DNA of 64,000 nt from Octopus bimaculoides (lineage: Eukaryota): assembly GCF_001194135.2 (NCBI RefSeq), contig NC_068996.1, forward strand, positions 20,805,579-20,869,578, given 5' to 3'. Position 1 is the first letter of the stretch. Each line of letters begins with the position of its first letter. The notes under the pieces are model-generated. The model did not search any database, was not told where the DNA came from, and saw nothing but the letters and a program-made list of their open reading frames with translations. A program made the translations under genes and the position numbers. Below, in pieces: positions 3,731-62,780 of this stretch.

Positions 3731-3732
3731 AT

Positions 3733-3733
3733 A

Positions 3734-3778
<45 letters not shown>

Positions 3779-3972
3779 TTATGTTTGACTTTTGTTTTGC
3801 ATTTGTACAAGTTGGATCCAAGTCTCACCCAGAGACCTCAAGAGACAACAAGTTAGAAGTTCATGTAGGTGTTATGCCTAGGGTACCATATATTTGGATT
3901 TGTACAGTTTTGTTCAAGTGAATGTTTAAGAAACCATAAGAAAAATTATTATTATTATTATTATTATTATTA

Positions 3973-4028
<56 letters not shown>

Positions 4029-5172: not shown

Positions 5173-5750
5173 GGTGCGATGGGTAAATTGTCGCCATTCT
5201 ATATTTTTAATTTCGTGCATGCACATTGTTTGTTTTTGATTTGCTGACTACACAGTATAGTAGGGTAAGTTGGGTACTGTTTGTGATAAAAACAGCACCA
5301 TGATGCAATTCACTTTACCAGAAATTTGAAAACAACATGTACTGCTTGGCATTCGCACTGGAAGCTCCAATACAAATATTTCAGAGTGTTTGGGTGTCAC
5401 TCTGAGGACGTACTGAGGGGGATAAAAATCAAACATCCAGTCAACATTGTGGTGTTTGGAGTGATCACTTGTGGTGGCGACATTATGCCTCCATTCATCT
5501 TCCCACACGGCCTCAGACTCAACATGGAGGCCTACATCAAGTGTCTGGAGAATGTAGTGCTGCCCTGGATCAAGAGGATGGCTACTGGAAGACACTTTGT
5601 CTGGCAACAGGACTCTGCATCATGCCACACAAGCAGGAGAACCCAGTCATGGCTGTCAGACAGTTTCTGCCACCACATCACCCCTAACATCTGGCCACCT
5701 AACTCCCCAGACTGCAACTCTCTTGATTATTATGTGTGGGGTGCAGTTGA
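5170..5750 (+). mobile_element. Tc1/mariner DD37D (maT-type) transposon remnant, internally deleted and 3'-truncated
   Basis: TA|CAGGGTG terminus after (TA)n. Peptide KHPVNIVVFGVIT..FVWQQDSASCHTS..WPPNSPDCNSLDYYVWG with 37 residues between the 2nd and 3rd catalytic Asp. Deletion near 5413 removes most of the HTH region and the first Asp; no right TIR seen. Confidence 0.85.
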
Positions 5751-7087
5751 TTTATATATTAATATAGTGATACACATAAAGCTTTTCCAGATTATAATGA
5801 ACAGCTATGGCATCATCATCATTTAACAAGCCATGTTTCCATGTTGGTATGGTTTGGATAGTTTGATGAGTCAGAGGACAACACCAAACTCCAATATCTC
5901 TTTTGGCATGATTTCTACTGCTGTTTTAACATCTACTTTTCCATGATTGCATGGGTCTGACAAGACTATGTTAGAACAGAACCCTTCCCATTATCTAACC
6001 ACCTCCTCTTGTTTCCAAATGGGGTTATAATCTCCCAGTCTATCAAGCAACAAACAGCCTGGACATGTGTTCATGGTGGACTACAAGCAAATGACACCAT
6101 GATGAAGCATTATTTACAAACCAATGAGTATTTAGCCCATTGCTATGTTGAGTTCAAATTCCGCTGAGGTTGACTTCGCCTTTCATACTTTTGGGGGTCG
6201 ATTAGACAAGTACCAGTTGAACTCTGGGTTTGATGTTATCGACTCATCCCCACCTCCCCCAAGCTGCCCCTGTGGCAAAAATTTGAAATGAATATTTGCA
6301 AACCAGTGAAAGCCAGCAAAATATGAAATACAGTGCTATAGTACAAGGCACTTGTCCAAAGTGTCAAACAGTGGGTCTGACTCTGAAACCACATGGCTGG
6401 GAAGACAACCTTTTAACCACACAACCATGCCTGTTACCTCACAGCTGTATCTCTGTCTATATACACATGTATGTGTTTGTATAAACATGTGTATACATAA
6501 ATACCTTGTGAATATTCCAGCTGTAAGGTCTATTTTGCCTTTCATCCTTCAGAGTAAACAAAATAAAGTACCAGTGAAGTGTTTGGGTTGATTTTGTCTA
6601 TTATTTTTTCGCCTTGTGTATTTCTGATCTTCTGCCTATGGTAGAAATCATCATCATCATCATCATTATTATTAAATTATTATAAAATTGTTAAGATGCC
6701 AGGCAAAATGCTTATCAGTATTGTGCAACTTTGTTCTGAGTACAAATTTTGCCGAGATTAATTTTGCCTTTCTTGACTGATAAATTAAGTACAAGTCAAG
6801 TATAGGGGTTGATGTGATCGACTATTTCCGTCTCACAAAATTTCAGGCCTTGTGCTGTTTTTTTTTGCCAAAACAACAAACTTTCGGGGTGTGTTAATTA
6901 CATGAACAGATTGTTTCCAGAAGTTTTTTAGAAATTTTTTGTTGAAAAATGATGTACAAATGTAAACATTCATACGGGAAGTTACTCATTTAATGTCAGA
7001 ATAAGTTTTCACAAATATAATGAAGTTGACTTTTATTTATGCTGGACGGTATAATTATTATTTTTATTATTGTTGTTATTATTATTA

Positions 7088-8093: not shown

Positions 8094-8766
8094 NNNNNNN
8101 NNNNNNNNNNNNNNNNNNNNNNNNNNNNNNNNNNNNNNNNNNNNNNNNNNNNNNNNNNNNNNNNNNNNNNNNNNNNNNNNNNNNNNNNNNNNNNNNNNNN
8201 NNNNNNNNNNNNNNNNNNNNNNNNNNNNNNNNNNNNNNNNNNNNNNNNNNNNNNNNNNNNNNNNNNNNNNNNNNNNNNNNNNNNNNNNNNNNNNNNNNNN
8301 NNNNNNNNNNNNNNNNNNNNNNNNNNNNNNNNNNNNNNNNNNNNNNNNNNNNNNNNNNNNNNNNNNNNNNNNNNNNNNNNNNNNNNNNNNNNNNNNNNNN
8401 NNNNNNNNNNNNNNNNNNNNNNNNNNNNNNNNNNNNNNNNNNNNNNNNNNNNNNNNNNNNNNNNNNNNNNNNNNNNNNNNNNNNNNNNNNNNNNNNNNNN
8501 NNNNNNNNNNNNNNNNNNNNNNNNNNNNNNNNNNNNNNNNNNNNNNNNNNNNNNNNNNNNNNNNNNNNNNNNNNNNNNNNNNNNNNNNNNNNNNNNNNNN
8601 NNNNNNNNNNNNNNNNNNNNNNNNNNNNNNNNNNNNNNNNNNNNNNNNNNNNNNNNNNNNNNNNNNNNNNNNNNNNNNNNNNNNNNNNNNNNNNNNNNNN
8701 NNNNNNNNNNNNNNNNNNNNNNNNNNNNNNNNNNNNNNNNNNNNNNNNNNNNNNNNNNNNNNNNNN
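8094..8766. other. Assembly gap (673 N)
   Basis: N run after (TG)n(TA)n. Confidence 0.99.
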
Positions 8767-13098: not shown

Positions 13099-13245
13099 AC
13101 ATTAATGAAAATACTTGACAGAAAGATCTAAATATATCAGAAAAGATGACAAGATGGTCATGGCTGATCAAAAGATTTTAGTTTGGCCCAGAGAAACTTG
13201 CTTAATGCAGCTAAAGTCAGAAACATGTTGGATGCATTTGTTGTT

Positions 13246-13603
13246 CAGTTCTATATTTAAGAGATGAGGAATTCTGTACATCATTTACATTCAACGGATG
13301 TTTGTCCTCATCTGGTTTGTTGTTAACACAACGTTTAGGCTGATATACCCTCTGATATATAACTATGCCATATGCCCATGGGCATATGGCGTAGTGGTTA
13401 AGAGTGCAGGCTACTAACCCCAAGATTCCAAGCAGTGATCTGAACACTAATAATAATAATATCGAAAAATACCTTAGGAATGAGAACCCAGGTTTGAAAT
13501 TTCCCCAAGAGACCTGAAGAAGGCTGGAGGGTATATCAGCCAAAACATTGTGTTAACAGCAAACAAGATAAGGACAAATATCCATTGAATGTAAATAATG
13601 TAT
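13246..13603. mobile_element. Palindromic tRNA-head/hammerhead element (family D), copy 1
   Basis: Left arm (internally deleted) begins CAGTTCTATATTTAAGAGATGAGG; perfect 24-bp palindrome at 13367-13390; right arm is tRNA-like head, (AAT)n, then CTGAAGA-A-GGCTG..CAGCC-AAAAC. Confidence 0.8.
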
Positions 13604-14640
13604 ATGTTGTTGTTTATGAGGTCAGACATGAGCCATTAGATCTATGGTCAAGTGGGTTCCTGAAATCGGCATCATGTATCTAGGACTATATTATGCAATA
13701 TGTTCTTCCTTTATAATCCTGAATATGATTTGAGGTATATTTGGTTGCTATTTCTACGAGGTTGTGCACTTACAGAGGTTCTCTAATGATGACAATATAA
13801 CCCTTCATATGGTAGCAGCACATGCTGTATACATTTTACATGTTATTCAACCTTAGAGTCATGGAATCAGTACCTTTTAAAAAGGTTATCTGTTCAATGA
13901 AAGGAACTTTGTCGATCAATTTAATGATGGCAAAAGATTTCTTGCAACAACAGTTTTTTTCTTGGATAAGTATTTTTCTGTTTAACTATATTTTTACTGT
14001 AGAGGAAGCATTTTCCAGAGTTTATTATAATTGTGATCATGTTGAGATTTTGAACCACATCCAAAGCAGAACTTTTCTTCATAATCACTAGTTTGAGGTT
14101 GCCTAATTAAATTGATGTTATCATAATTAATAGTTACATTTTTGTGCATCTTGCATGCTGTTTAACCAAATCATATGTTTGTACCATCAATATTTTTACT
14201 GTGATATTAAATGACTGCAAACAATTTTACCCACATTGTCAACGAATTGATCCTCTTATTACAGTACTACTATCATATTTATTAAAATGCATATTTTTTT
14301 TTACGTATGCTAACATAGATTACATATGATAATGTAGATAATATAGCAAAATGAAGATTGTCTATGTTGGTAAAACCAGGCTAGAATACATTTCTCTCAT
14401 CAGACTTGAACATGAATCAAGTTTTTCAGAATGAATCAAACGATGGTGTTGTTGTTGAGGATAACAAACTACCTCAAGACTGTGAACTTGCTCAGGAATA
14501 ACCTAAACTATTGTATAGTCTAAGTAGCTCTACAAGAATAAATGAAGGATACCAGTAATGAAATACAGTCCTTGATGTGAATGTATATAAAAGAGGAGTG
14601 AAAAAATAACATTTACATGGTAGTGTCACATGCCCTAGAT

Positions 14641-22888: not shown

Positions 22889-23268
22889 ATATGTAACATT
22901 CAACAGTTCAGTCCACCCGTCTATAACGAAGAACCACAGGGTGGTATAATTTGTTACATTATACAAACTATAAAATTGATGAGTGTTATACTACAATGGA
23001 GTAAAATCCAACAGTAAGTAGGGTACATTTCTCTTGTTCAGGAGGAAGAGGGAGGATGGTAAACATTTCCATAAAACAATTACAGTTGTTAGAGAAACCA
23101 ATGTCATATGGGGATGTGTCAAGTTTATTGTATTGCTCAACATTTTAAGGCACAAACTGATTACAAAACAAACAAAAAAAAAAATTTCTAGTTTAAAAGA
23201 AAAATTTATTTGTAGAGGATTTGGAATGAAGTTTAAGTTACTAATTAGGAATGAAGTTTAAGTTACTA

Positions 23269-23446
23269 ATTGTGCCTTAAAATTTAACACACTCACCAGT
23301 AAAATTTCCACTTATTTTTCTTATTACTTTCCTAAAATTTTCAAGACTATTGATAAGGTTGCAAGACACAATGAAAATTTTAGGACAGTAAAAATAAAAA
23401 TAAGTGGAAATTTTACCAGTGAGTGTGTTAAATTTTAAGGCACAAT
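23269..23446. mobile_element. MITE / fold-back, about 180 bp with about 75-bp inverted arms
   Basis: ATTGTGCCTTAAAATTTAACACACTCACCAGTAAAATTTCCACTTATTTTT ... AAAAATAAGTGGAAATTTTACCAGTGAGTGTGTTAAATTTTAAGGCACAAT. Confidence 0.75.
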
Positions 23447-24935
23447 AAGAAAATGACTCTCCCCAGACACAACAGATTAAGTTACTAATTTTTAATAAAA
23501 CTTGTATCTGTGTACAACAAGAATAATTGACAAGAACTGATTTGAATATACTAGACATGATTAATAGTGAATTATTAATCATGCCTTCAGTAATACTAGA
23601 TACAATGAAGACCAGTTAGAGACAGCAAAAAGCAATAATCTTACGAGTGAGGCATAACTTTTAGCATTCAGATTACTCTGTCAAATGTAATTCTTATTTA
23701 TTCACAGTTTTGAATTAATCATGCATTGCAAGGTAGGTATGAGAGGCCAGATCTAGCTGGTTTGAACGTAAAAGAGAATATTTGAGACACATATGGCTGG
23801 TTTAAATGCTAAGGGGTCAAGTTACAAATTAGTGCTTGAATTGTGGTTGGGGATTTCATCAGTAAACTTGCTATTCTTTTCTGCAATAGACCCCTACTCC
23901 TCTTCCTTGCTGCTGCCACCGTTGTCACCATCATTACTATCTAACGTCTGTTTTCTGTGCTGGCATGGGTTGGATGGTTTGACAAGGAGAGAAGGAACAG
24001 TGATGGATTCCTAGTTGAATGTTTGCATGATGTAATATTGATAACAGAATTTATATATGTTAGGGAGTGATTAATGGAAATGATGCTGTAATTGTCATCA
24101 TCACCACCACATTCCTAATAAACATAAAGTCTTAAACTGTCCATTAATTTACCATCAGGAGACTGACCCTCTCATTTTGTTTAGATTATAGCAGAAAAAT
24201 AAATATATACTTTATTTTTAAATAATTACACATGGTTGAATAAGTTAGTAACCTTTTATAATAAAAGGAATATATTCATTCAAATACATCAAACACAATT
24301 CGAAAGAGTAAGAGAAAGTTGTAGCGAAAGAGTCAGCAGAAGTTCACCATTACCTTCTGCCGGAGCCACATGGAGCTTAGGTGCTTTGCTCATGAACACA
24401 AACACCACCCAGTCTGAGATTTGAACCCGTAATCCCTTGACAACAAGTCTTTTTAGCAAGACAACAATAGGCAAGTGTTAATAATTATAAGAAAAGCAAC
24501 AATCACTTTCAAATTAGGCAGAGGGCCAGCACTTTTGAGCAGAGAGTATTAATTGATACCACTGACTCCAGTATTTGACTGCTATTTATTTTACTGAGAC
24601 TGGAAGGATAAAAGGCAAAACTGACTTCAGTGGATTTTGACCTCAGAATGCAAAACCCCAGAAAAAGTATTGTTAGCCCCTTTGATATTGACTCACCCTG
24701 CACCACCCATTATTCTAATGATACAAACTTTCTGTTTTAAAGTGAATAAAATTAAATCTTGCATCAGAAATTTCATATTAATTTATCTTCCAATCTTTGG
24801 CTTAATACTGATGAAGATATTTTACTAGAGTCTTCATTATTATGAGAATTAATTGAAACAAAGGCAGTGTAATTCAACAGAAACCTAATAACAAAAGTGT
24901 TAAGCATTTTGTCTGACCCTCTAATGATTCTACCA

Positions 24936-25497
24936 ATTATTTACATTATTTACATTTGACGGATATTTGCCCTCATCTTGTTTGTTGTTAACACGTTTCA
25001 GCTGATACACCCTCCAGCCTTTATCAGGTGTCTTGGGGAAATTTCGAAACTGGGTTCTCATTCCTAAGGTATTTTTCGATGTTATTATTATTATCATTAT
25101 TATTATTATTATTATCCAGGTCAATGCCTGGAATTGAACTTGGAATCTTGGGGTTAGTAGCCCATGCTCTTAACCACTATGCTATATGCCCATGGGCCCA
25201 CAGGCAATTGGCGTAGTGGTTAAGAGTGCGGGCTACTAACCCCAAGATTCTGAGTTCGATTCCAGGCAGTGACCTGAATAATAATAATAATTGTAATAAT
25301 AATAACAACAACAACATCGAAAAATACCTTTGGAATGAGAACCTAGGTTCGAATTTTCCCCAAGACACCTGAACAAGGCTGGAGGGTATATCAGCCAATA
25401 TGTTGTGTTAACAACAAACAAGATGAGGACAAATATCTGTCAATTGTAAATAATGTAAATAATGTACATAATTCCTCATCTCTTAAATATAGAACTG
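24936..25497. mobile_element. Palindromic tRNA-head/hammerhead element (family D), copy 2, most complete
   Basis: Two arms of about 250-290 bp in inverted orientation around TATGCCCATGGGCCCACAGGCA (about 25184-25206); right end CCTCATCTCTTAAATATAGAACTG. Confidence 0.85.
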
Positions 25498-26624
25498 GAT
25501 TCTACCACTCCACTGCCTGAAAACACCATGAGAGAATGCTGATTTGTTTGTTCCTTCTCGAGCCATGATTGGCTCATAAGGGCTAGTTTCCCAGTTTTGT
25601 TGCCATATAGGTTCCCCACCTGGACGGGATGCCGGTCCATCACAGGTGAGCTGCTAGGTGCAGGAAGAAAGAGTAAGAGAAAGTTGTGGCAAAAGAGTCA
25701 GCAGAAGCTCCCCATTACCTTCTGCCAGAGCCATGTGAAGCTTAGATGTTTTGCTCATAAACACACACCGCCCAGTCTGAGATTCGAACCCGCTGCTCTA
25801 ACCACTAGGCCATGTACCTCTAAGAACGCTGATTTACTGCTATGAAATATTCCAGTAACAACAAATAAAATTTGACCAATTGGCATAGAATCACTTAGTG
25901 TTATTTCCTCTTTCTGTATCACAACTAAAATGGCTTCTACTTCTTGGAGTTAGCTGAGTTCATAACTCCACTCAGGCATTACTTACCCACTTCCCTCCGC
26001 TCCTTTCAATACCCTTGTTGTGTCCAACACCAGCCTGAACTTCACATTAACTCCTAATCCTAATCCATTTTATCTAGAATATTGACCCCATAAAACTCTA
26101 CTCATTGTTTTTCCTGTAGGTGTTAATTTGCAGTCCCACCTTAAGAAAACATTAATGGTTTCAATCTCACTAGTCTCAAGGGGATATTGGAAATGATGGG
26201 TACCACCCCATCCTCTGGCTCCAGCAAGTAAAGACAGAAAAAGCATCAAATAAGAAAAAAAATTTACAAAAATGTTGAAGAATAATTCAATAATTATTGT
26301 ACAAAAGTATTGGTTATTACCTCATATAACACACACACATATTATAGAATGTGTGTTGATTACAACTTTAAGATACACCCGATGGCTTATTCAATACATG
26401 ACTGTTTGAATAAGCTTCATATACAAAACTTGGCAGTTCCAGTTAACACAACCTTTACAATAAATCTGACTCTACTTTCAGTATTGAGTCTCCTCCATCA
26501 TCAGTAAATGTTTTGTGGTTATTCTTAAACTTGCATTAAAACAATCTTATTTTAACACACATGCGTGCACACGTGCACACACGCTCACACACACACACAC
26601 GTACACACACACTCACTAACTAAC

Positions 26625-28674: not shown

Positions 28675-28884
28675 NNNNNNNNNNNNNNNNNNNNNNNNNN
28701 NNNNNNNNNNNNNNNNNNNNNNNNNNNNNNNNNNNNNNNNNNNNNNNNNNNNNNNNNNNNNNNNNNNNNNNNNNNNNNNNNNNNNNNNNNNNNNNNNNNN
28801 NNNNNNNNNNNNNNNNNNNNNNNNNNNNNNNNNNNNNNNNNNNNNNNNNNNNNNNNNNNNNNNNNNNNNNNNNNNNNNNNNNNN
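28675..28884. other. Assembly gap (210 N)
   Basis: N run truncating a family A SINE. Confidence 0.99.
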
Positions 28885-29169: not shown

Positions 29170-29251
29170 CATTTAAACTTCTCATTAATCTTGGGGTTGG
29201 TAGCCCACTCTCTTAACCACCATATGCCCGTGGGCCCACGGGCATATGTGA

Positions 29252-29292
<41 letters not shown>
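29170..29292. mobile_element. Family D element, copy 3 (collapsed centre only)
   Basis: Antisense tRNA-head fragment, perfect 28-bp palindrome CATATGCCCGTGGGCCCACGGGCATATG (29221-29248), then TGACCTGAAT(AAT)n. Confidence 0.75.
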
Positions 29293-29293
<1 letters not shown>

Positions 29294-29800
29294 GTATAAA
29301 AGATGGGCTACAATAGTATAAAAGATGGGCCACAGCAAATATTCTGCTTAATACCATAGATTTGCTTGTCAGTTGTTTGACCGTAACCAGTTGAGGATAT
29401 CCCTTGGTGGCTGACGATATGTGCATCTCTGATCATGAGCAGAAGTAGTGGGGGAGCATCATAGCCATGTGTTGAGAGGAATTCTTTGGGGTTTGAATAA
29501 TTCACCTTTGGAAACATGGGTGTTTTGCTCAACATCCTTAAACAATCCTTATTCAGGGACCTTTTGAGCAGGATGGGCTACTCGACCCGAAGAAAATTCT
29601 AACTGGGCCCCACCTGCGAGGTCATGCGCTGTTTATCTTCATATGAGATCACCATATCGCGCACATATGGTTGTGATGCATGTGTCTGGTGTACCCTTAT
29701 CAGGTGGGTAGTTGTGATGGGTATACTGGGCTTTTCATATTTTACCCCAGTGTCACTTTGATGGCATGCACTGCTCTCTCACTCAATAATAATAATAATA
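29293..29800 (+). mobile_element. (AAT)n-tailed non-autonomous retroelement family F (second copy 33625-34050)
   Basis: The two copies share GTATAAAAGATGGGC..TGCTTGTCAGTTGTTTGACC..GATGGCATGCA.TGCT.TCTCACTCAATA; both begin right after an (AAT)n run. Confidence 0.65.
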
Positions 29801-30091: not shown

Positions 30092-30222
30092 CTCTTGACA
30101 ATGTTGTCTTGCTAACATAACACATTCTGCAATTATTGAAAGATTGGATTTTCCACCAAATACTTGGCGCTTGAACATGTCAACAAATATTTTCAGTTCT
30201 TGATGTGACCAAACAACAATGG
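30092..30222 (-). CDS. EXOC8: EXOC8 exon
   Basis: TAG acceptor, GTGAGG donor. (A)IVVWSHQELKIFVDMFKRQVFGGKSNLSIIAECVMLARQHCQE versus human AFVVWARSAMGMFVDAFSKQVFDSKESLSTAAECVKVAKEHCQQ. 131 nt; absent from the ORF track. Confidence 0.95.
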
Positions 30223-30251
30223 CTACAAGGAGAATAACAACAACAACAGTA

Positions 30252-30285
<34 letters not shown>

Positions 30286-30478
30286 GGACTTACAAATATA
30301 TATAACATACAGAAAATTGCACTACTGGGCACTGCACACATCCTACGCAAAACACTTTCAATACAGTAACCATAAGAGCACCACAGCAAACCACAGCACA
30401 TACCCAAGGCGCACAGAGCTGTGCTCGGTAGTGAAGTGAAAGCACGTTATAAAAATAAAACTACTGAACAATAATAAC

Positions 30479-30525
<47 letters not shown>

Positions 30526-30526
30526 C

Positions 30527-30574
<48 letters not shown>

Positions 30575-32260: not shown

Positions 32261-32612
32261 ATGTACCTGAAACTATCAAATGTCAAATAATAATCCTTCC
32301 TTCTATAGGTACACTGTCTGAAAGTTTGGGAGCTAGTTGATTACATTGACCCCAGCACTCTACTGGTACTTTGTTTCACTGACAATTAATTTATTGACCC
32401 TGAATCCCTTCTATTATAGGCATAATTTGGGGGAGGGGGACAGTAAATTACTTTGACCCCAGTGTGTAACTGGTACTCATTTCATCAATCCCAAAAGGAC
32501 GAACAGCAAAATCAACCTCGGCAGAATTCAATGTAAGGCCAGACAAATGCTAAGCATTTTGCCCAGCATGCTAATGATTCTGCCAACAACAATAATAACA
32601 ATAATAATTATG

Positions 32613-32654
<42 letters not shown>

Positions 32655-33585: not shown

Positions 33586-33620
<35 letters not shown>
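32700..33620 (+). mobile_element. R4/Dong-like (RLE) LINE 3' fragment with (TAA)n tail
   Basis: SWLSKDDLKKKTGNLIIAAQDQALNTNSVK..CRMCG..LAEKEYKCRHNKVAQNLHW, then ILWDFDFQ, KVVPVVIGALGSIP and LQKLALLGTACILHK. Confidence 0.8.
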
Positions 33621-33628
<8 letters not shown>

Positions 33629-35669
33629 GCCTTGATGCAGTACCAAGCAGTGGCTCTCATGGCTTCTGATCTTAACTGACTGGAAGTGTTATCATGTACA
33701 TTGTTTGTCTTGGTATAAAAGATGGGCTACAGCAAATATTCTGCTTAATACCACAGATTTGCTTGTCAGTTGTTTGACCTTAACCAGTTGAGTTTGTCCC
33801 TTGGTGGCTGACGATATGTGCATCTCTGATCACGAGCAGAAGTAGTGGGGGAGCATCATAGCCATGTGTTGAAAGGAATTCTTTGGAGTTTGAATAATTC
33901 ACCTTTGGAAACATGAGTGTTTTGCTCAACTTCCTTAAACAAACCTTATCAGACAGGTAGTCACGATGGGTACATTGGGCTTTGTATATTTGTACCCTAG
34001 TGTCACTTTGATGGCATGCATTGCTTTCTCACTCAATACATAATAACAACAACAATATTGAAAACAATTCTATTAAACTGTGTATTAGCTAATCAACAGA
34101 ATATCATTGTCATAATGATCATTGTTTTAATGTCTACCTGTTCTTGCATGGGTCAGATGAATTTGCTGAGGTAGATTTTCTATGGTTGGATGCCCTCCCT
34201 GTTGCTAACACTCACCTATTTCCATTCATAGTTATATTTCTCTGTGCCAGGCATGTTTTTCATAGATGTTTTTATACAAAAGACATCACTTGTATGTCAG
34301 TGACACTTGTTTACAACCATCATGTAATGACAAGACAAGGAGACACCAACAACAATTCATATACACATGTATACATAAGTATACATGAATATGCATGTGA
34401 TAGACTTCTTTCAATTTCAATCTATCAAATCCACTCACAAAGCTTTGGTCTACCTAGAACTGTAGAAGACTTGTCCAAGGTACCATGCAATGGGACTGAA
34501 CCCAGAACCAAGTGGTTGGGAAGCAAGCAATGCCTGTGCCTGTATATCCTTATATATGTAAGTATGAAGTGTGTGCTTGTATATATAAAACATGTGGCAT
34601 ATGAAAAAAGGTTCTGAAACAAAACAGAAAAGAAAGAGAGGAAAATAGTCAGGTTAGGACATATAACACAACTGGAATAATGCAAATATAGAAAAATGAA
34701 TGTTAAAATGAAGATAATGATGATGTCAGATCTTTCATTACTTGCTATATTGTGCAATGTTTGGTTGTGTGCAACATGACAGTCTCACTCTCTCTCTCTC
34801 TCCCTTTCTCTTTGTTATAAATGTAACCCCTAATTTAGGCATTCATGGTGTAAAATGGGAGGGAGTAAGTAGAAAAAGGTGTGTTTGTCAATGTTTTGAC
34901 TGAGAAATCTTTTTACTGAATCATTATACGTTTTCTCTCTTCATGGCAGAAGGGTCACTTTGCAACCACATGGTTTTGGGCAAGTGCCTTTTACTGTAGC
35001 CCTGGGCCAGTGAATGAATTCAGTAGATAGAGACTGTGTGGAAGCCGATCTTGTGTGTGTTTGTGTGTGTGTGTACACACACACATATATATCATCATTT
35101 AATGTCTGTTTTCCATGCGGGCATGGGTTGGACAGTTTGACAGGAGCTGGTAGCCAGAAGATTGTACCAGGTTGTAAAGTTGCTGGCATTAGGAAAGGCA
35201 TCAAGCCATACAAACCATTCCAAAATAGACAATTGGAGCCTTGTGCAGCCCTTCAGCTTGCAAGTTTCCAGTCAAACTATCCAACTCATGCCAGCATGGA
35301 AAACTGATGTTAAATGATGATGATGATGATGATGGTTATGATGATGGTTATGATTGTGATGATGAAGAATTGCTGTAAGTATGCTGTATTTTGATGTTTT
35401 TTGCAAAATGGTTGACCCTTTGGTTATTGTCATCCATTGTATGTAACTAATATAACAAGCTTCACAGTGGATGTTTGTTAGTCAGATATTCTTAATCTGG
35501 AGTCTACTGTAGACAATTCCTCTCAGGCGATGTACAACATATTCCCTTCCACATCTAGAATAATAGTTGTGGTTGTGTGGCATGTTGGGCAAGTGTTTTC
35601 TGCTATATCATGGGCCGACCAAAGCCATGTGAGTAAATTTGGGAGATGTAAACTGTATGAAAGACCATC

Positions 35670-35728
<59 letters not shown>

Positions 35729-35970
35729 TAAACGGGTGAATGGACAAATGAAAGAAAAAGGCATTCAGCCAATTTTCCAGTAGCCAACTGGATATGAATC
35801 TGTGACCTTTGAGTTAGTAATCCAGTACCTGATATTTCCCAACAACTCCTTTATTTTCTTGTAAAGTAATGTAGCAAAAACGATAAGAGTACAGAAGACC
35901 AAAAATCAAAGGATAATGGTGAAGCTGTTGGTGATGAGGATGACAATGATGAGTAAAATCAAATAGTTAC

Positions 35971-36151
35971 CAGAATAACAGCCGTAATTCTGTGGAAATG
36001 CTTTCATAAATTCTTTGCCTGTTTCAGCTAAACTTGAGAAAAATCCTGTACAGAGACGCTTGATGTACAATGTTGTTGAACCTTCAAACTTCAATTGTCT
36101 GATGTTATATTTAATAATGGCACTCCGGTTGTTCAGAAACAGTTCACAGGC
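35971..36151 (-). CDS. EXOC8: EXOC8 exon
   Basis: TAG acceptor, GTAACT donor. ACELFLNNRSAIIKYNIRQLKFEGSTTLYIKRLCTGFFSSLAETGKEFMKAFPQNYGCYS versus human ACELFLRNRAAAVHTAIRQLRIEGATLLYIHKLC. 181 nt. Confidence 0.97.
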
Positions 36152-39100
36152 CTAATAAAATACACAAAATAAGGATCAGAAAGTTCTCATTAGACTAATG
36201 ATTATAACATATCTAGTTGTTGATTTCATACTAGTTAGCTTCAGTTCAATCCATTTCTACCAGACCTGTGATCAAGGGCCTACTAGCCGTGGCCACCCCA
36301 CCTTTTCTTTTCAAGCACAGATTACTCACAACGTTATCCAATGTATCCTTCTTTTCTAAGACAATAGAGTATGAGTTATTGAAGGAGTATTGGCAGCTTT
36401 TCTAGCACAGTGAACAATTGTGTAGTGTCTCGTTGAAATTTGAAAGAGTAGTGAAAGCCATACAGCAAAAGGTACACTCCCATTCAGCTGAGATCATGCT
36501 GTTGTTTCAATTTTTACAATCTTTTTTAAAGGCATTTATTTCTACCCTTTCCAATCTAAAAGTTATGTAGTTCTTTTACACTTTTGTTTGAAGTTAAAAC
36601 CTTGTAACTACCATGTTTTAAGCACTATCACAGATACATGCCATGTACACTATTGCCTTATTTTCTCCAGATTCTGATTTTAAATACCCACAGAGCCACA
36701 ATCTATTCTTTTCATCCCCCCTCTCCCAACTACCATAACCAAGAAATATAAGGAATTGAGGCAAGCGAAATCGGAATCGTGATGGCACCGGTGCCCTGGC
36801 ACATGTAAGGACATTTGAGCGAGATCATTGCCAGTGCCGCTGGACTGGCTCCTGTGCAGGTGGCACGTAAGTAAAAGACACCACTTTGAGCGTGGCCATT
36901 GCCAGTACCGCCTGACTGGCCTTCGTGCCGGTGGTACGTAAAAGCACCCACTACACTCTTGGAGTGGTTGGTGTTAGGAAGGGCATCCAGCTGTAGAAAC
37001 TCTGCCAAATCAGATTGGAGCCTGGTGTAACCACCTGGTTCACCAGTCCTCAGTCAAATCGTCCAACCCATACTAGCATGGAAAGTGGACGTTAAACGAT
37101 GATGATGATGATGATGATAATAAGGGTTAATTCAATTCAACTACAAACCTCCTCCTCCTCATCATCGTTTAATGTCCAGCTTCCATACAGGCATGGGTTG
37201 GACAGGCCAGGTAGGAGTTTGCATCAGACTTCTGTTTTTGTTTTGGCAGGGTTTTTATGGCTGGAAACCCTTCCTAACACCAACCACCCAGCTAAATGGA
37301 CTGAGTGCTTTTTATGTGGCATCAGCACAGGCGAGGTCAGCTTTGGCAAGATTTTTACAGCTGGATGCTTTACCAAATGCCAACCATATTACAATGTGGA
37401 CTGGATACGTTTTATGTGGCATCAGCACACCCACTCCAGAATTTGGTTTTGTGTCAAGACATAAGGAATCAGGGATCTTTTCTGTTGATGACATTTTCCT
37501 ATTTTTTTAGAATTTTGTTCCAATTGTTTTCAAATTTGGTGTATCAATTTAGTTTTGTATGCTAATTATGAAAAGGAAATTGATAAATAAAAAGTTAATA
37601 GCTTTTAAAATTTGCAAATTTTGGGTAATTCTTTAGCCAATAGAAAGCCACAGACATATTAGTGCTTCTTCCTATAGTAACAAGGCAAGCAAATCTGTAG
37701 CTAGCTGTCTGAACCACCATCACCACCACATGTATATTCCTTTAGCCTATGTAATTTCTTTGATGATGAGTCAAACCCTCATCCTAATCCTGAACCCTAA
37801 ATCTAACCTTAAACCCTAATGTACAGTTTATTTTTTAATTTTGTAATTTTACACAAAAAAAATTTTGTTTTGAAATTATTTACATGTCTGTTCAACAGTT
37901 TTTACATGACTTTATTCATCAAAATTTATTAAAACATCTGACAACGTAAGTTGTCATAATGTTTTGCTTTCTTTTTGTTTGTAAAAACTTCATCATTGTA
38001 ATGTTTTTTGCTTTCATTTTGTGATAGACTGCTCTCATGCAGAAAATCCCAGCTTCCAAATCTTGTTTTCTGATCAAACTTTAAACTTTTGTAACATTCT
38101 TTCTTAATTTTTTTCTGCTACAGATGAATCAGAAAATCAGATTCAGCGTAAAAAATTATATCAATATACCAAATTTGGAAACTGTCACTTAATTTCGAAG
38201 TTTCAAAATGTGACAGCAACTGCAAAAATCTGAAATTAGTATTTTTCTTGAATTTAGTCTATTGGGAAAATAATTCCTTGAATAATCTAGTAGAAAGGCA
38301 GTGTGGTAAGAAGTTTGCTTCCCAACCATATGGTTCCAGAGTAAGTGTCTTCTACTATAGCCTTGGGCTGCCAAAGCCTTGTAAATGGATTTGGTAGTTG
38401 TAAAGTGAAAGAAGCTTGTCGTATATATACATATCCCCTCTCTCCCTCTCTCTCTCTCTCTCTCTCTTTGGGAGAAAGGCACAAGCACATACACAGACAT
38501 ATACACACACGGCAGTAACTTTTGCCTACCAAATTCAATCACAAAGCTTCGGTCGGCTCGGGGCTATAGCAGAAGACACTTGCCCAAGGTGCCATGCGGT
38601 GGGACTGAACCCGAAACCATGTAACTGGGAAGCAAGCTTCCTAACCACACAGCCATGCCCGTTCACCACTGCTTGACAACTGGTGTTGGTTTGTTTATGA
38701 CCCTGTAATTTAATGGTTCAGTAAAAAGGACTAATAGAATAAATATCAGGCCTAAGGAAGAAAAAAAAAGCTACTGAAGTTAATTCATTCAACTAAATCC
38801 CTTTAAGGTGGGGCCCCAGCATGGCCCCAATGACTGAAACAAGTAAAAGATAAAAGGTAACGAACATACATGCATACACACACACATACACACAATCTTG
38901 ACATATTCCTTGTGGAGCACTCAGTATGAATTCCCAGCTAGCTACCCATTAAGAATGATATTTGATCATGTGATTTCACAACATGGGTGCATATATGCAT
39001 AAAAAAAACAAGTATGAGGTTGAAATAAAAATTAATTAAACAAAGGAGTGGCTGTGTGGTAAGTAGCTTGCTTACCAACCGCATGGTTCCGGGTTCATTC

Positions 39101-40021
39101 CCACTGCGTGGCACCTTGGGCAAGTGTCTTCTACTATAGCTTCGGGCCGACCAAAGCCTTGTGAGTGGATTTGGTAGACGGAAACTGAAAGAAGCCTGTC
39201 GTATATATGTATATATATGTATGTGCGTGTATATGTTTGTGCGTCTGTGTTTGTTTCACCCCCCTCCCCCAACATCGCTTGACAACCGATGCTGGTGTGT
39301 TTACGTCCCCGTAAGTTAGCGGTTCGGCAAAAGAGACCGATAGAATAAGCACTAGGCTTCCAAAGAGTAAGTCCTGGGGTCGATTTGCTCGACTAAAGGC
39401 GGTGCTCCAGCATGGCCACAGTCAAATAACTGAAACAAGTAAAAGAGTAAAGTAGGTAAATTTGTCTTTTTCCTCTTTCCTTGTGTTCTCTCTCCCTCTC
39501 TTCATTTCCCTATTTATATTTAAATAAATCTCTGCTGGTTATAACAATGAGTGTTCAGCTATTTCATGAACAGCTGAATACTTATTGGAGTTAGTGTGTA
39601 AAACTCAGTGTTTCCCACCCTTAACATAATCTTTAGGTGGAAAGGTGGAATCAGTGTTACATAGTGTGTGGCAAGGTTGGACCTTTGAATTACAGATATA
39701 CTCCATCCAATGAGATTCCACATAGATTCCATCTATCCCAATGTCACTCACATGGATTGAACTGAGGTTATAGTAAAAGGCATTTTTTGAAAATGCCATC
39801 CTGTGGGATTGAACCAAAGACCTCCCAGTTAAAGAAACAACAACAGTAACAAGCTATAAAGTGTTAAGTGTCTGGCGTTGGGGTAGGAGGAACTGTCAAC
39901 CTGTTAGTGTGTTGTTTCATCCACCTCAGTCACTCAGCCAATTGTGACTCTATTCAAAAATAAATAAATAAATAAAAATGGTAACTGAATTTTATCTCTC
40001 AAAAGAACTGCTGGAACCTAC

Positions 40022-40166
40022 TTGAGCAGACTTCCCAAGACGGATAAGCTGTGTCACTGCTCTTCTTGCAGCTCTTGGACCACCTCGAAGAGACCGTTCT
40101 GGTGTCACTTGTAATTCACTCATTAATCCTTCTGTTAATTGTTTAATCCTATGATCAATGCGAGCT
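40022..40166 (-). CDS. EXOC8: EXOC8 exon
   Basis: CAG acceptor, GTAGGT donor. (K)ARIDHRIKQLTEGLMSELQVTPERSLRGGPRAARRAVTQLIRLGKSAQ versus human AKVEERVRQLTEVLVFELSPDRSLRGGPKATRRAVSQLIRLG. 145 nt. Confidence 0.97.
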
Positions 40167-40286
40167 CTGCAAGAAACAAAAGGCAGGATGTGTAAAAATT
40201 ACTTAGCAGAAAAAGAAAACAAAAAATTTTAAAGATAATTTCACATTATAAACATTTTTACTTTATTCTGAAATTCTTTTTTTATT

Positions 40287-40660
40287 AAACAGAAATACAT
40301 TTATTTCTCAAACGCGTGATAATGCTATAAATAGCGTGATCAGGATAAATTATCCATATAATGCAGAAAAATATGTTGCCGGCCAGCCAAAGCTATATTT
40401 ATAAGTTCTATAATTGCAGAACAATTCGTTGCTGGGCAGTTTAGTTTAATGGTAAAACACTTGACGCGTAATCACAAAGATGTGAGTTTGAGTCTCATGG
40501 CTGGCCAGTAACGTATTTTTCTGCATTATATGGATAATTCATTCTGATCACGCTATTTATAGCATTATCACGCGTTTGAGAGATAAATTTATTTCTGTTT
40601 CATACAATACATCTCAACACTTCTAAAAAAACAAACTTTGTTTGTTTACTTTCATTGTAA
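40287..40660. mobile_element. Fold-back element family E enclosing a tRNA-Thr-like cloverleaf (copy 1)
   Basis: 103-bp inverted arms 40287-40389 and 40498-40600; tRNA-like sequence 40434-40506. Confidence 0.8.
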
Positions 40661-44788: not shown

Positions 44789-45531
44789 GTGTGTGCACAT
44801 GCGTGTAGGTGTGTGACTTAGTAGTGTTGCAATCATGATTGTAAGATTGTAGTTTTGATCCCTGGACTAGGCGATGTGTTGTGTTTGCAAGCAAAACACT
44901 TCAACTTCATGTTGCTCTCATCCAATCAACTGGCAAAAATGTGCAATCCTGTGGTAGACTGGTGTCCTATCCAGTGGGGGAATATATACACCACAGAATC
45001 TGAGAAACCTATGGCCTGGGAAGGACCTTTGATCAATTTGATATATGTATCTGTGAATATATATATATATATATATACATACACACACACACACACACAC
45101 ATACATACATAGTGCTAATTAACAAACTTCTATGTAATCACTTCACCAGCATGATATAGCAACAAAATTAACTTCCTACTATTGATTAAAACAAAAAAAA
45201 AACAAAAAAAACTAGGATCCACAGAAGCTGTTTACTTTGTTTAATATGCTTAATGTAGCAGCCAACTTCCTATCAACGATGTTGCTTCTGGAACCATTCA
45301 AACCAACGAAAGATCTTCAGGTATACATTTAATTTAATTAATGAACTTTCTCATCGCCTGTAAAAGGAATACCATGTTTGAAGAACAGGCATTTTAGGGG
45401 TAATATACAATAAAGATAGCAACACTATGGTTATTCACACACACACACACACATTTATGGTTTGTTGCACTGAAATGTTTTTTTTTTTAATGTAAAAACT
45501 GTAAAATAAGCAATTTTTCGATTTTTTTTAC

Positions 45532-45681
45532 CTCTCTCTACCAAATCAACAGCTCCTTCAAAATCTCTTTGAGCAATACACATATCTGAATCTTCAGGAA
45601 GTTCTTGGAGCCAGTCAGTATTGAAAACACTGTTTTCAATAGCATTTTGTTGCTGGAGAACACCAGAATTTTCTTCAAAAG
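45532..45681 (-). CDS. EXOC8: EXOC8 exon (start of Exo84 C-terminal helical domain)
   Basis: CAG acceptor, GTAAAA donor. (P)FEENSGVLQQQNAIENSVFNTDWLQELPEDSDMCIAQRDFEGAVDLVER versus human EWIQELPEDLDVCIAQRDFEGAVDLLDK. 150 nt. Confidence 0.97.
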
Positions 45682-54343: not shown

Positions 54344-55341
54344 TAGTTTTAGGGAAAATAACCAATTTTCAAGAACTCATCGATGAAAATCCACTATCAC
54401 ATATAGAAAAATTAATAATTAAAAGCACAATAAACGAGTATAATATAAAGTAAAGTAAATATCATAAGATAAATATAATAAAAAGATTACACGTGTTTCA
54501 TAACCAATTTTCAAATAGAAAAGAAATTTAAATCGATTAAAATCAATTGAAATATATATACTGTGCTCTTTATATATGTATATGCACAACAGAACTTCTG
54601 CCAACCAAATTCAATCTCAAGGCATTGGTTGATCCAAGGCTATTGCAAATGACACTATCCCAATGTGCCATGCAATGGGACTGACCCCAAAACTATGTGC
54701 TTGAGAAGCAAGCTTTCCTACCACACAGCCATGTCTGATGTGTGCACGTGTGTGTGTGTGTGCACGCGCACCTTTGTGTTAATCCTTGTCCCACACCATC
54801 ATCTGACAACCAGCGTTGGTTTGTTTACATACCCATAACCTAGCAGTTTGAAAAAAGACTAATGGAATGAGTACCAAGGTCTATTTGTTCAACTAAAACC
54901 CTTCAAAGTAGTGCCCTGCATGGCCACACTCTAATGAATGAAACAAATAAAAGATAAAGATAATTCAGTGGCATAGTATGGGTTTTGACTACCCATTTCC
55001 TTAAATGTAACATATCTTTGATAATAGCAAACATATGGATATAATGTGGCTGCCTGGTATAGTCTCCCCATCCATACACTATGCTGATACATGAGTGATA
55101 AGGGAGATGTGTGATAAGGGTCAAGTGTGAAAGAGAGGCTACCAAAGAGCCTAAATGTAACCTTAACAGTGTGTGACTGATGACATATAACTCTAATGAC
55201 CAAAATATGAGCCTGATGATTTAGAAACACTAATGATGAAATTCTGACAGTAAAGTCTGCAGAAATAAAATTCACCAACAATAAAAAGGGCAGAACAACA
55301 CTTCATATTCAGTTAATAAAAAATAAATTAATTGTCACTAT

Positions 55342-55381
<40 letters not shown>

Positions 55382-62327: not shown

Positions 62328-62780
62328 TATTGTAAGATACAGAAATAAATTTATTTCTCAGACTCGAACTCACATCTCTGTGATTACATCACGCGTTTGA
62401 GAAATAAATTTATTTCTGTATCTTACAATACATCTCGAAGCTTCTAAAAAAGAACAAACTTAGTTTACTTTCATCGTAAAGTTGAATTTAACGTTAGCGT
62501 CTTATGAAGCTAAATTTATAAGTTCTAAAATTGCAGAAGAATTTGTTGCTGGGCAGTTTAGTTTAACGGTAAAACACTTGACATGTAATCACAGAGATGT
62601 GAGTTCAAGTCTCATGGCTGGCCGGTAACATATTTTTCTGCATTATATGGATAATTTATCCTGATCACGCTGTTTATAGCATTATCATGTGTTTGAGAAA
62701 TAAATTTATTTCTATTTCATACAATACATCTCAATGCTTCTAAAGACAAACTTTGTTTACTTTCATCGTAAAGTTGAATT
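62328..62780. mobile_element. Family E element (copy 2): short perfect hairpin plus tandem partial duplication plus tRNA-Thr-like cloverleaf
   Basis: Perfect 33-bp inverted repeat 62328-62360 / 62398-62430 enclosing an antisense tRNA fragment; tRNA-like 62551-62623; the 3' module occurs twice (about 62390-62490 and 62680-62780). Confidence 0.8.

Follow-up and report, generated by a model that had tools for sequence, protein, structure and literature searches.

The window analysed here, a 64,000-nucleotide stretch of Octopus bimaculoides contig NC_068996.1, contains ORFs representing Exo84 exons, C-terminal fragments of LINE reverse transcriptases (RTs; no Pfam match) and a mariner DDE_3 remnant. 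An old and decayed repeat element lies within the intron-rich Exo84/EXOC8 gene or immediately downstream of it. At positions 24936–25497 (locus A) it is composed of two inverted-repeat arms separated by a 0-nt spacer. Other inverted structures in the window, namely a symmetric MITE, a tail-to-tail SINE pair and a TIR element, differ in kind. The palindrome described at this position by the original prediction is real, with inverted arms that abut directly and a perfect 10-bp target site duplication (TSD). Locus A contains the following features:

24910–24918, plus strand: flank motif TGTCTGACC, present elsewhere in the window only at 13620–13628 (minus strand)
24926–24935: left TSD copy GATTCTACCA, an identical 10-mer abutting both element ends
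24936–25196, minus strand: short (inverted) arm A_L, head complete, last motif GTAAATAATGTAAATAAT, no terminal tail
24990–25032, minus strand: hammerhead-type motif of A_L, GACAC-CTGATAA-A-GGCTGG...CAGCT-GAAA-CG-(3-nt deletion)-GTGTT
25130–25141, minus strand: decayed B box counterpart AAGTTCAATTCC in A_L
25189–25204: head-to-head junction, CCCATGGG followed without spacer by CCCACAGG
25197–25497, plus strand: primary arm A_R, unit complete including the 34-nt tail
25209–25219, plus strand: A box TGGCGTAGTGG
25252–25263, plus strand: B box GAGTTCGATTCC
25364–25409, plus strand: hammerhead-type motif of A_R, GACAC-CTGAACA-A-GGCTGG...CAGCC-AATA-TG-TT-GTGTT
25464–25497, plus strand: one-sided 34-nt tail GTACATAATTCCTCATCTCTTAAATATAGAACTG, in A_R only
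25498–25507: right TSD copy GATTCTACCA, perfect over 10 bp

The unit begins with a 5-nt leader and a tRNA-Ser-like head that bears the Pol III A and B boxes. An (AAT)n linker and a further ~55 nt of spacer separate this head from a minimal type I hammerhead motif of the Penelope type, which is followed by a 3′ region of ~50 nt. A_R has all five modules in this order, with CCCAC as its leader, and continues into the 34-nt tail. The (AAT)n linkers are present as predicted, and the lesions are indeed mostly CpG-type: A_L and A_R are 87.7% identical and 13 of the 22 transitions between these sister arms are of this type. The locus A junction is itself a CpG-decayed form of CCCGTGGG joined to CCCACGGG, a junction also seen at locus C (see below). 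Within the A_R tail, TCCTCATCT is complementary to the internal sequence AGATGAGGA.

The A box matches TRGCNNAGTGG exactly, begins 12 nt after the arm start and is also exact at 13387 in locus B. The B box is found at 25252 exactly as predicted, one mismatch from GGTTCGANNCC, and the spacing between the two boxes is 32 nt. The head scores 15.6 bits against the Rfam tRNA model (gathering score 29). With relaxed settings (-ps70), ARAGORN calls a tRNA-Ser(ACU) on A_R only and does not call the consensus; on the whole window it reports no tRNA. The proposed tRNA-like Pol III head is consequently upheld with respect to its A and B boxes and to an arm start at the expected transcription start, while its likeness to tRNA is weak. 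The start common to all arms is predicted to be the position at which a Pol III transcript would begin.

Further loci and shared ends

Locus B (13246–13604) and a partial junction locus, locus C (29187–29299), belong to the same family as locus A:

13238–13245, with a right copy at 13607–13614: probable TSD TTGTTGTT of locus B, about 8 bp
13246–13374, minus strand: primary arm B_L, with a 29-nt tail (13246–13274)
13325–13342, minus strand: 3′ half of the hammerhead motif in B_L, CAGCC-TAAA-CG-TT-GTGTT
13375–13382: locus B junction, one CCCATGGG common to both arms
13375–13604, plus strand: short arm B_R, A box at 13387–13397, B box deleted, ending at GTAAATAATGTATA without a tail
13509–13554, plus strand: hammerhead-type motif of B_R, GAGAC-CTGAAGA-A-GGCTGG...CAGCC-AAAA-CA-TT-GTGTT
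29187–29299: locus C, third head-to-head junction, heavily rearranged

B_L has lost its 5′ core, linker and most of its head through an internal deletion (junction near 13352). The exact length of the locus B TSD is ambiguous (6–9 bp) because the target is a (TTG)n microsatellite. At locus C, an inverted partial head (29187–29234) meets the undecayed form of the junction at 29227–29242, and the right side consists of an internally deleted head followed by (AAT)n to 29299. BLAST and nhmmer profile searches of the window returned only the four arms and junction C, so that the evidence base comprises four near-identical arm sequences of one family and one additional junction, all about 12% decayed. 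No family copies were found in 20 kb of O. bimaculoides DNA or in ~125 kb of other cephalopod DNA (9 loci), and Exo84 exon peptides brought up only distant cephalopod loci in which the introns are not conserved. Exact-pattern scans of metagenome and viral collections gave 0 matches to the element, as did a profile of its accidental ORFs against a database of 5.8 billion proteins, and four of its diagnostic strings are absent from the full-text literature searched.

The ends of the element are shared between loci. The arm start, CCCAC, is the same nucleotide at all three, 12 nt upstream of the exact A box. All three loci are arranged head-to-head, with either a 0-nt spacer or a shared 8-nt turn at the center, in agreement with the predicted insertion as a palindrome. 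The terminal CTTAAATATAGAACTG had been assigned to each arm and is in fact found on one arm per locus only, as a tail of 34 nt on A_R and of 29 nt on B_L, that is, on opposite sides in loci A and B. The tail-less arms of these two loci end at most 5 nt apart. A 9-nt duplication of GTAAATAAT is present in both A arms and in neither B arm, and at a further site the A arms have CA and the B arms TG. Not one site sorts the arms of loci A and B by arm type. Each palindrome thus goes back to a single template. An inherited palindromic master with diverged arms was considered and rejected, because arm characters are locus-specific and none is specific to an arm type. At both full loci, a copy of TGTCTGACC lies 15–17 nt outside the short-arm end and 5–7 nt beyond the TSD, in like orientation relative to the element; this is possibly a target-site motif or a coincidence.

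The hammerhead motif

Minimal hammerheads of Penelope-like elements (PLEs) were reportedly addressed by Lünse, Weinberg and Breaker in 2017. The motif in the octopus unit consists of a 5-bp helix I, CUGANGA, an unpaired A and a helix II of 5–6 bp closed by G10.1-C11.1, followed on the 3′ side by GAAA, a palindromic ACGU replacing helix III and a GUU site. The original prediction had placed it in four stretches, all of which were recovered. In the 5′ catalytic box (C3-U4-G5-A6-N7-G8-A9), CTGA and A9 are present in all three arms covering the box. Position G8 has no majority among these arms, being C in A_R, A in A_L and G in B_R, and an intact CUGANGA box is found in B_R only. The unpaired A before helix II is present in 3/3 arms covering the position. 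Helix II, GGCTGG/(T)CAGCC, has 5–6 bp and the G10.1-C11.1 pair in A_R, B_R and B_L (3′ strand only), while in A_L a C-to-T change converts the closing pair to G-U. The 3′ catalytic box with its neighbor (G12-A13-A14 and A15.1) reads GAAA in A_L and AAAA, AATA or TAAA elsewhere. G12 is therefore a G in one of the four arms, and the ancestral G is recovered only by the logic of CpG decay (TG / CA, CA / CT): the position and its preceding nucleotide show the pattern of a decayed CpG (CT-G once, CC-A twice), which gives CCGAAA as the ancestral sequence of the consensus, if not of every copy. The palindromic 15.2–16.2 segment without a helix III loop, U16.1 and H17 are present, with ACGTT intact in B_L; the counterparts in A_R (TG) and B_R (CA) are both CpG decay products and A_L carries a 3-nt deletion. 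In A_R and in the consensus, helix I (GACAC/GTGTT) has 5 bp, one of them G-U. Overall, A_R has lesions at G8, G12, A14 and C15.2, with a predicted cleavage site between 25404 and 25405, and A_L has lesions at G8 and C11.1 and a deletion of 16.1/17. It had been proposed that the consensus core is intact and that no single arm is. The latter is correct; the former is qualified by G8, which lacks a majority, and by G12, which depends on CpG-decay logic.

The CpG-corrected consensus matches the published descriptor of minimal PLE hammerheads (traits in PMC4209133). This descriptor finds the consensus and yields 0 matches in 20 Mb of random sequence of matched composition, even when any nucleotide is allowed at G8, supporting the assignment of a motif derived from PLE-type minimal hammerheads. 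In combination with the perfect 10-bp TSD, this result indicates that the structure of locus A is not due to chance. The minimum free energy fold of the consensus corresponds exactly to helices I and II. The fold energy is unremarkable (z = -1.1 for the consensus, z ~0 for the raw arms) and is counted as evidence neither way, and the dimer predicted by RNAcofold is a domain-swapped duplex and uninformative. The Infernal search suggested by the original prediction did not bear fruit: no Rfam hammerhead model matched at gathering score in the whole window or at E<=10 in loci A and B, where the output consisted only of the 15.6-bit tRNA match and of miRNA-hairpin matches that are spurious, being caused by the palindrome. 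This null result is weak negative evidence, because minimal PLE hammerheads have no helix III and the copies carry mutations. With no intact arm and no majority at G8, processing of the element by the ribozyme is not supported. Cleavage by a lone sense hammerhead would separate the head from the 3′ priming region, and a role in processing is thus not obvious. Most likely, the hammerhead was inherited from the 3′ end of a PLE.

Comparison with known elements

The hammerheads found in PLE pseudo-LTRs act as dimers (Cervera & de la Peña 2014, PMC4209133). They share with the octopus motif a helix I of 4–5 bp, CUGANGA (complete in B_R only), an unpaired nucleotide before a long helix II, G10.1-C11.1, GAAA and a palindromic 15.2–16.2 segment without a helix III loop, which entails the dimer requirement. 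In both cases motifs are paired on opposite strands at a distance of a few hundred bp; dual minimal hammerheads 100–700 bp apart on opposite strands are known from Schistosoma mansoni (PMC4209133). The octopus motif differs in that its unit, ~270 nt long, has a tRNA-like Pol III head and lacks an RT or endonuclease (EN) ORF, and in that G8 has no majority in its decayed copies. In PLE insertions, an inverted copy lies at the 5′ end, and a tail of 30–40 bp is often confined to one end (Craig, Yushenova, Rodriguez & Arkhipova 2021, PMC8557442). The octopus element likewise shows an inverted copy abutting the 5′ end, a one-sided tail and TSDs, and one of its two targets is a microsatellite, as also seen for PLEs. 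The inverted copy and one-sided tail agree with the PLE-style inverted insertion that had been predicted (PMC8557442). In contrast to canonical PLEs, with their 5′-truncated inverted copy and direct pseudo-LTR, the inverted arm of the octopus element is 5′-complete, its 3′ end is defined and no direct repeat of the unit, such as a partial tandem of the pseudo-LTR kind, is found at any locus.

SINE-like retroposons combining Pol III transcription with a hammerhead are already known from Schistosoma (Smα/Sjα; Ferbeyre et al. 1998; Laha et al. 2000; PMC6765202). Compared by description rather than by sequence, Smα/Sjα and the octopus element are both short and non-autonomous, with apparent Pol III transcription (predicted for the octopus element) and a type I hammerhead. 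The Smα hammerhead, however, is canonical and fast, makes loop-loop contacts and has a real, if short, helix III, and Smα is organized largely in tandem arrays with a promoter downstream of the cleavage site, whereas the octopus element combines the minimal PLE type with head-to-head palindromes and a 5′ tRNA-like head. Animal non-LTR retrozymes, proposed to depend on PLEs, are non-autonomous hammerhead-bearing units of ~300 nt and low GC content (Cervera & de la Peña 2020, PMC7229834; Li, Clavereau & Pollet 2026 preprint, 10.64898/2026.07.22.740005), and the octopus unit resembles them on each of these counts. Retrozymes form direct tandems and circRNAs and carry one canonical type I hammerhead per monomer but neither a tRNA head nor a palindromic arrangement, while the octopus arms are inverted. 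With no tandem direct repeats at any locus, the suggestion of a retrozyme hybrid could not be sustained. The tRNA-derived SINEs of octopus (tRNA-Core/tRNA-Deu, PMC8967140) share with the element a tRNA-related Pol III head, dispersed intronic copies and the host genus; they possess a Core or Deu domain and a LINE tail instead of the PLE-type hammerhead 3′ module, and every copy of the element seen is a head-to-head dimer. The element is consequently a new-looking variant whose parts are all known and does not represent a new category of system.

Proposed mechanism, alternatives and significance

We consider it probable (about 0.6) that the element is a non-autonomous retrotransposon (SINE) of ~270 nt that joins a tRNA-like head to a PLE-type minimal hammerhead, is mobilised by a PLE and inserts as a head-to-head palindrome. 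As originally proposed, it is a non-autonomous retro-inserted element, judging by its TSDs and asymmetric ends; the TSDs of 8–10 bp at loci A and B point to insertion at a staggered nick. Transcription of a master copy by Pol III would start at the first nucleotide common to all arms. The RT and endonuclease, presumably those of a PLE, would then carry out target-primed reverse transcription at the staggered nick, using the hammerhead-containing 3′ module, whose source is probably a PLE pseudo-LTR. At the 5′ end of the RNA, the RT would switch to the nascent cDNA. At junctions A and C this switch would be end-to-end; at junction B it would occur by snap-back on the terminal CCC-N2-GGG, the expected product of which is the single shared CCCATGGG. 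The RT would then copy back and stop at a defined position ~30 nt before the end, which would yield the anatomy observed, a palindrome with a tail at one end. Because no further copies and no partner PLE were retrieved, PLE dependence and ribozyme activity remain inferences. More tentatively, the element may exemplify a class of PLE-dependent SINEs in which the Pol III-defined 5′ end obligatorily becomes the palindrome center by template jumping or snap-back and integration is guided by TGTCTGACC.

An ordinary tRNA-derived SINE moved by a LINE (RTE or CR1), with the hammerhead-like block as a dead relic or as a conserved SINE core serving another role, and with palindromes arising by generic RT snap-back at the 5′ end of the RNA, appears unlikely. 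It is favored by the great abundance of octopus SINEs, automatically classified as tRNA-Core/tRNA-Deu with LINE partners (PMC8967140), by the LINE RT fragments in the window, where no PLE ORF (RT, GIY-YIG EN) is found, by the failure to retrieve any PLE sharing the 3′ module, and by the state of G8 and the Rfam hammerhead result. Against this, the motif combines all traits of minimal PLE hammerheads, including the bulged nucleotide and the ACGU palindrome, far beyond chance, and the head-to-head arrangement of 3/3 loci is not seen in the other SINE families of the window. The loci could instead derive from an autonomous PLE, each being a very short copy of its terminal (pseudo-LTR) part with an inverted partner; the tRNA-like stretch would then belong to the PLE terminal region. 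PLE insertions are typically strongly 5′-truncated with an adjacent inverted copy and carry hammerheads in their pseudo-LTRs (PMC8557442, PMC4209133), and many minimal hammerheads occur isolated or paired away from full PLEs (PMC4209133). We regard this explanation as quite unlikely, as truncation points should vary, whereas three independent loci start at the same nucleotide, which is the expected Pol III start, and the inverted arm is not truncated at its 5′ end. A tRNA-like Pol III head would also be unusual in a 3-kb ORF-bearing element.

The almost wholly palindromic structure, a terminus beginning with CAGTTC and the presence of symmetric MITEs and of a long-TIR element with a tRNA-like center in the same window recall a foldback or MITE DNA transposon, reminiscent of Tc1/mariner in its terminal CAGT..., whose long TIRs would contain tRNA-like and hammerhead-like strings by chance. 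A transposase requires both ends, but the termini are asymmetric at both full loci: one arm lacks the terminal 29–34 nt, from a near-identical position but on the left in A and on the right in B. TSD length varies (10 vs about 8 bp) without a TA, and the junction variants fit cDNA end-joining or snap-back. The DNA-transposon reading, very improbable on this evidence, was rejected on account of the asymmetric termini. Local inverted duplications or assembly artefacts without transposition are barely credible: the assembly is gapped (N runs at 1300–1473, 8094–8766 and 28675–28884) and palindromes are error-prone in assemblies, but three loci share the junction nucleotide in different flanks and the TSD of locus A is perfect. 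The ~12% divergence of the arms, with CpG-type decay, shows that they are old genomic sequence and not a read artefact.

Octopus genomes contain abundant Penelope elements, which have expanded there (PMC8967140), and the integration of PLEs, with its tandem or inverted copies and one-sided tails, is mechanistically unresolved, an in vitro system having been called for (Craig et al. 2021, PMC8557442). A Pol III-transcribed passenger of 270 nt with a fixed 5′ end would be a compact substrate for studying this mechanism, and its two readable junction types (end-to-end and snap-back) and one-sided tail would help to dissect it. If true, a PLE-dependent SINE would provide a natural, short and tractable reporter of PLE integration and the first tRNA-headed SINE with a PLE partner. 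For the host, intronic palindromes of ~560 bp are potential sources of hairpins or dsRNA and potential fragile sites. The element would tie the abundant SINE compartment of octopus to PLEs, beyond LINEs, and the combination of Pol III transcription with a hammerhead would reach beyond schistosomes.

Structure and termini of the palindromic element

The palindrome at 24936-25497 (locus A) is real, and its two arms are inverted with a spacer of zero and 87.7% identity, in agreement with the head-to-head arrangement of the original prediction. The repeated unit of ca. 270 nt is made up of a tRNA-like head with A and B boxes, an (AAT)n linker, a spacer, a hammerhead motif and a 3' region. The predicted boxes were recovered as exact matches, the linkers were found and the four motif-bearing stretches lie where they had been placed. 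Besides locus A, BLAST and nhmmer profiles identified exactly two members of the family, the full locus B (13246-13604) and the partial junction C, with no additional copies in the window or in ca. 145 kb of cephalopod DNA.

Features of the palindromic family
24936-25196, minus strand: arm A_L
25197-25497, plus strand: arm A_R
13246-13374, minus strand: arm B_L
13375-13604, plus strand: arm B_R
29187-29299: partial junction, locus C
25209 (locus A) and 13387 (locus B): A box, exact match
25252 (locus A): B box, exact match
24926-24935 and 25498-25507: perfect 10-bp target-site duplication (TSD) GATTCTACCA, adjoining both ends of locus A
25464-25497: one-sided tail ending ...CTTAAATATAGAACTG, 34 nt, arm A_R
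13246-13274: one-sided tail ending ...CTTAAATATAGAACTG, 29 nt, arm B_L

Locus B has a (TTG)n tract as its target, and the duplication there measures ca. 8 bp. The terminal ...CTTAAATATAGAACTG, originally described for each arm, is present on one arm per locus only, and the tail-less partner arms end after GTAAATAAT or GTAAATAATGTATA at positions no more than 5 nt apart. The arm ends represent a defined unit end with an extension on one side rather than random truncation. Within the tail of A_R (25464-25497), TTCCTCATCT is complementary to the internal AGATGAGGA (25419-25435) about 45 nt upstream, a pairing that would allow a 3' stem-loop. Together with the A-rich stretch behind it, TTCCTCATCT may also resemble the conserved CORE-SINE/MIR core (…TTTCCTCATCTGTAAAATGGG…); if this likeness holds, automated pipelines might tag the family SINE/tRNA-Core. 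In the spacer preceding the hammerhead, CCYAGGTTCGAAATTTCCCCAAGA (25340-25362), two strings from the tRNA-like head (25240-25266), TTCGA and CCCCAAGA, recur in permuted order; this may reflect a vestigial second tRNA-related unit or be coincidental. With both strands counted, the window has only two occurrences of the 9-mer TGTCTGACC, at 24910-24918 (plus) and 13620-13628 (minus). At locus A as at locus B, the 9-mer is 15-17 nt beyond the end of the short arm, and its orientation with respect to the element is the same in both cases. The flanks are otherwise unrelated between the two loci, and with n = 2 and a rough chance of about 1e-3 the 9-mer may mark the target site of an endonuclease or be coincidental.

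Central junctions, templates and the hammerhead motif

Loci A and C possess an identical spacer-less junction of CCCGTGGG and CCCACGGG, with CpG decay in A, while at locus B a single CCCAYGGG is common to both arms. The latter is the product expected from extension of a cDNA ending ...CCCGTGGG-3' after it has snapped back at its CCC-N2-GGG. Read in this way, the junctions place the arm start at the same nucleotide, the 5-nt leader CCCAC, in all three loci. This start precedes the A box by 12 nt and the tRNA-like +1 by 5 nt, the position at which Pol III initiates on tRNA-type promoters. A 9-nt duplication of GTAAATAAT is present in both A arms and in neither B arm, one site has CA in the two arms of locus A but TG in the two arms of locus B, and no site in the four-arm comparison groups arms by arm type. 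Because of this locus-specific pattern, sequence comparison indicates that the two arms of each locus were copied from one template.

The four arms approximate a star phylogeny (sister-arm identity 87.7% vs 88-89% to the arms of the other locus), and 55-60% of transitions among them are in CpG context. Restoring CpGs only at sites where arms split TG/CA yields the consensus GACAC CUGAANA A GGCUGG(8-nt loop)UCAGCC GAAA CG U U GUGUU. The claim of an intact consensus core was overstated: of the three arms that cover G8 of the CUGANGA box, one has C, one A and one G. The consensus fits a descriptor coded from the published minimal hammerhead of Penelope-like elements (PLEs) (PMC4209133), with helix I of 5 bp, helix II of 6 bp, a loop of 8 nt and a bulge of 1 nt. 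The descriptor had no match in the raw window, and even with G8 free it had none in 20 Mb of sequence generated by a first-order Markov model of window composition. The minimum free energy (MFE) structure of the consensus consists of exactly helices I and II, at an energy that is not exceptional (z = -1.1). The suggested Rfam search gave no match to any hammerhead model even at E<=10. The motif block is very probably hammerhead-derived, given the descriptor fit, the lack of chance matches and the MFE fold. As a whole, the original observation largely holds after two corrections, and its interpretation is partly supported.

Genomic setting and other repeats

The eukaryotic 64-kb window has a GC content of 35%, a CpG observed/expected ratio of 0.26 and three N gaps. 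It contains minus-strand exons of the exocyst component gene Exo84/EXOC8, intron-rich here, called from Pfam Exo84_C matches on an exon and on homologues and from a conservation with distant cephalopod loci that is confined to exons. The palindromic insertions studied lie within Exo84/EXOC8 introns or downstream of the gene. A 20-kb O. bimaculoides locus has several repeat families in common with the window at 80-90% identity.

Other features of the window
45530-45622, 40020-40172, 35969-36153, 30092-30187, minus strand: Exo84/EXOC8 exons (Pfam Exo84_C)
23263-23452: symmetric MITE, 81-nt terminal inverted repeats (TIRs), 91% identical, 28-nt centre
36964-37287: SINE pair, tail-to-tail over a (GAT)n tract, core ...GTCCAACCCATGCCAGCATGGAAA...
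40280-40607: TIR element, about 330 bp, 110-nt TIRs, 92% identical, with one tRNA-like sequence between them
40435-40506: tRNA-like sequence inside the TIR element (Rfam tRNA, 30.7 bits)
62552-62623: near-identical tRNA-like sequence (34.6 bits)
5326-5826, plus strand: Tc1/mariner-type transposase remnant (weak Pfam DDE_3)
3731-4028, 30250-30574, 32594-32653, 33586-33633, 55340-55380: (AAT)n/(ATT)n microsatellites, numerous across the window

The other inverted structures examined (three) differ in kind from the palindromic family. Two copies of the abundant SINE-like family with the GTCCAACCCATGCCAGCATGGAAA core, also found at 35091-35321, are arranged tail-to-tail over the (GAT)n tract, which suggests insertion into or beside microsatellite tails; the head-to-head family is organised differently. 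The structure at 40280-40607 resembles a TIR element or MITE with a tRNA-like gene and belongs to another family. The best named relative of the mariner-type remnant is in Octopus bimaculoides; an 'uncharacterized protein' of that species is among the relatives, as are numerous ORFs from ENA cephalopod contigs. The (AAT)n microsatellite repeat is also the internal linker of the palindromic element.

Candidate route of mobilisation

The insertions are of retro type, with TSDs and a 5' end fixed at the predicted Pol III start. Each palindrome was copied from a single template, the junctions fall into two classes and the tail is one-sided. An assembly artefact or local duplication has a negligible probability, being excluded by the three loci, the TSD and the ~12% arm divergence, and a foldback or MITE DNA transposon is very improbable, refuted by asymmetric termini and variable TSDs. 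Mobilisation by PLE machinery is the reading we infer, based on two published PLE-specific insertion signatures, the inverted copy at the 5' end and a 30-40-bp tail that is often confined to one end (PMC8557442), on the PLE-type hammerhead together with the report of minimal hammerheads paired on opposite strands 100-700 bp apart (PMC4209133), and on Penelope elements being abundant in octopus genomes (PMC8967140). A SINE mobilised by a LINE, with the hammerhead motif as a relic, is an unlikely alternative to this assignment. Slightly less likely still, the copies would be short pieces from the end of an autonomous PLE and no SINE, a reading against which stands the invariant arm start at the Pol III site.

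Under PLE mobilisation, the unit would be transcribed by Pol III and PLE RT/EN would prime on the 3' module containing the hammerhead. At the RNA 5' end the RT would either jump end-to-end onto the nascent cDNA or snap back on it, and copy-back would stop at a defined point about 30 nt before the end. With a single sense hammerhead per transcript, dimerisation would require a second RNA, and the predicted cleavage after GUU would leave the head and the 3' priming region on different pieces of RNA. The hammerhead may be kept merely as a piece of the RT-recognised 3' module.

Each ingredient of the element is already published: Schistosoma Smα and Sjα are SINE-like, Pol III-transcribed and hammerhead-bearing (PMC6765202), PLE pseudo-LTRs carry minimal dimer-type hammerheads (PMC4209133), and both inverted and tailed PLE insertions (PMC8557442) and non-autonomous, putatively PLE-dependent retrozymes (PMC7229834; preprint 10.64898/2026.07.22.740005) have been described. 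Canonical PLE copies possess a direct pseudo-LTR and an inverted copy truncated at the 5' end, whereas the octopus element has no direct pseudo-LTR and its inverted arm is complete there. The family may already be catalogued under a generic label, e.g. SINE/tRNA-Core. What appears to be new is the combination of a tRNA-headed SINE with a PLE minimal hammerhead as its 3' module, in a cephalopod host, with all three copies seen being head-to-head palindromes centred on the transcript 5' end.
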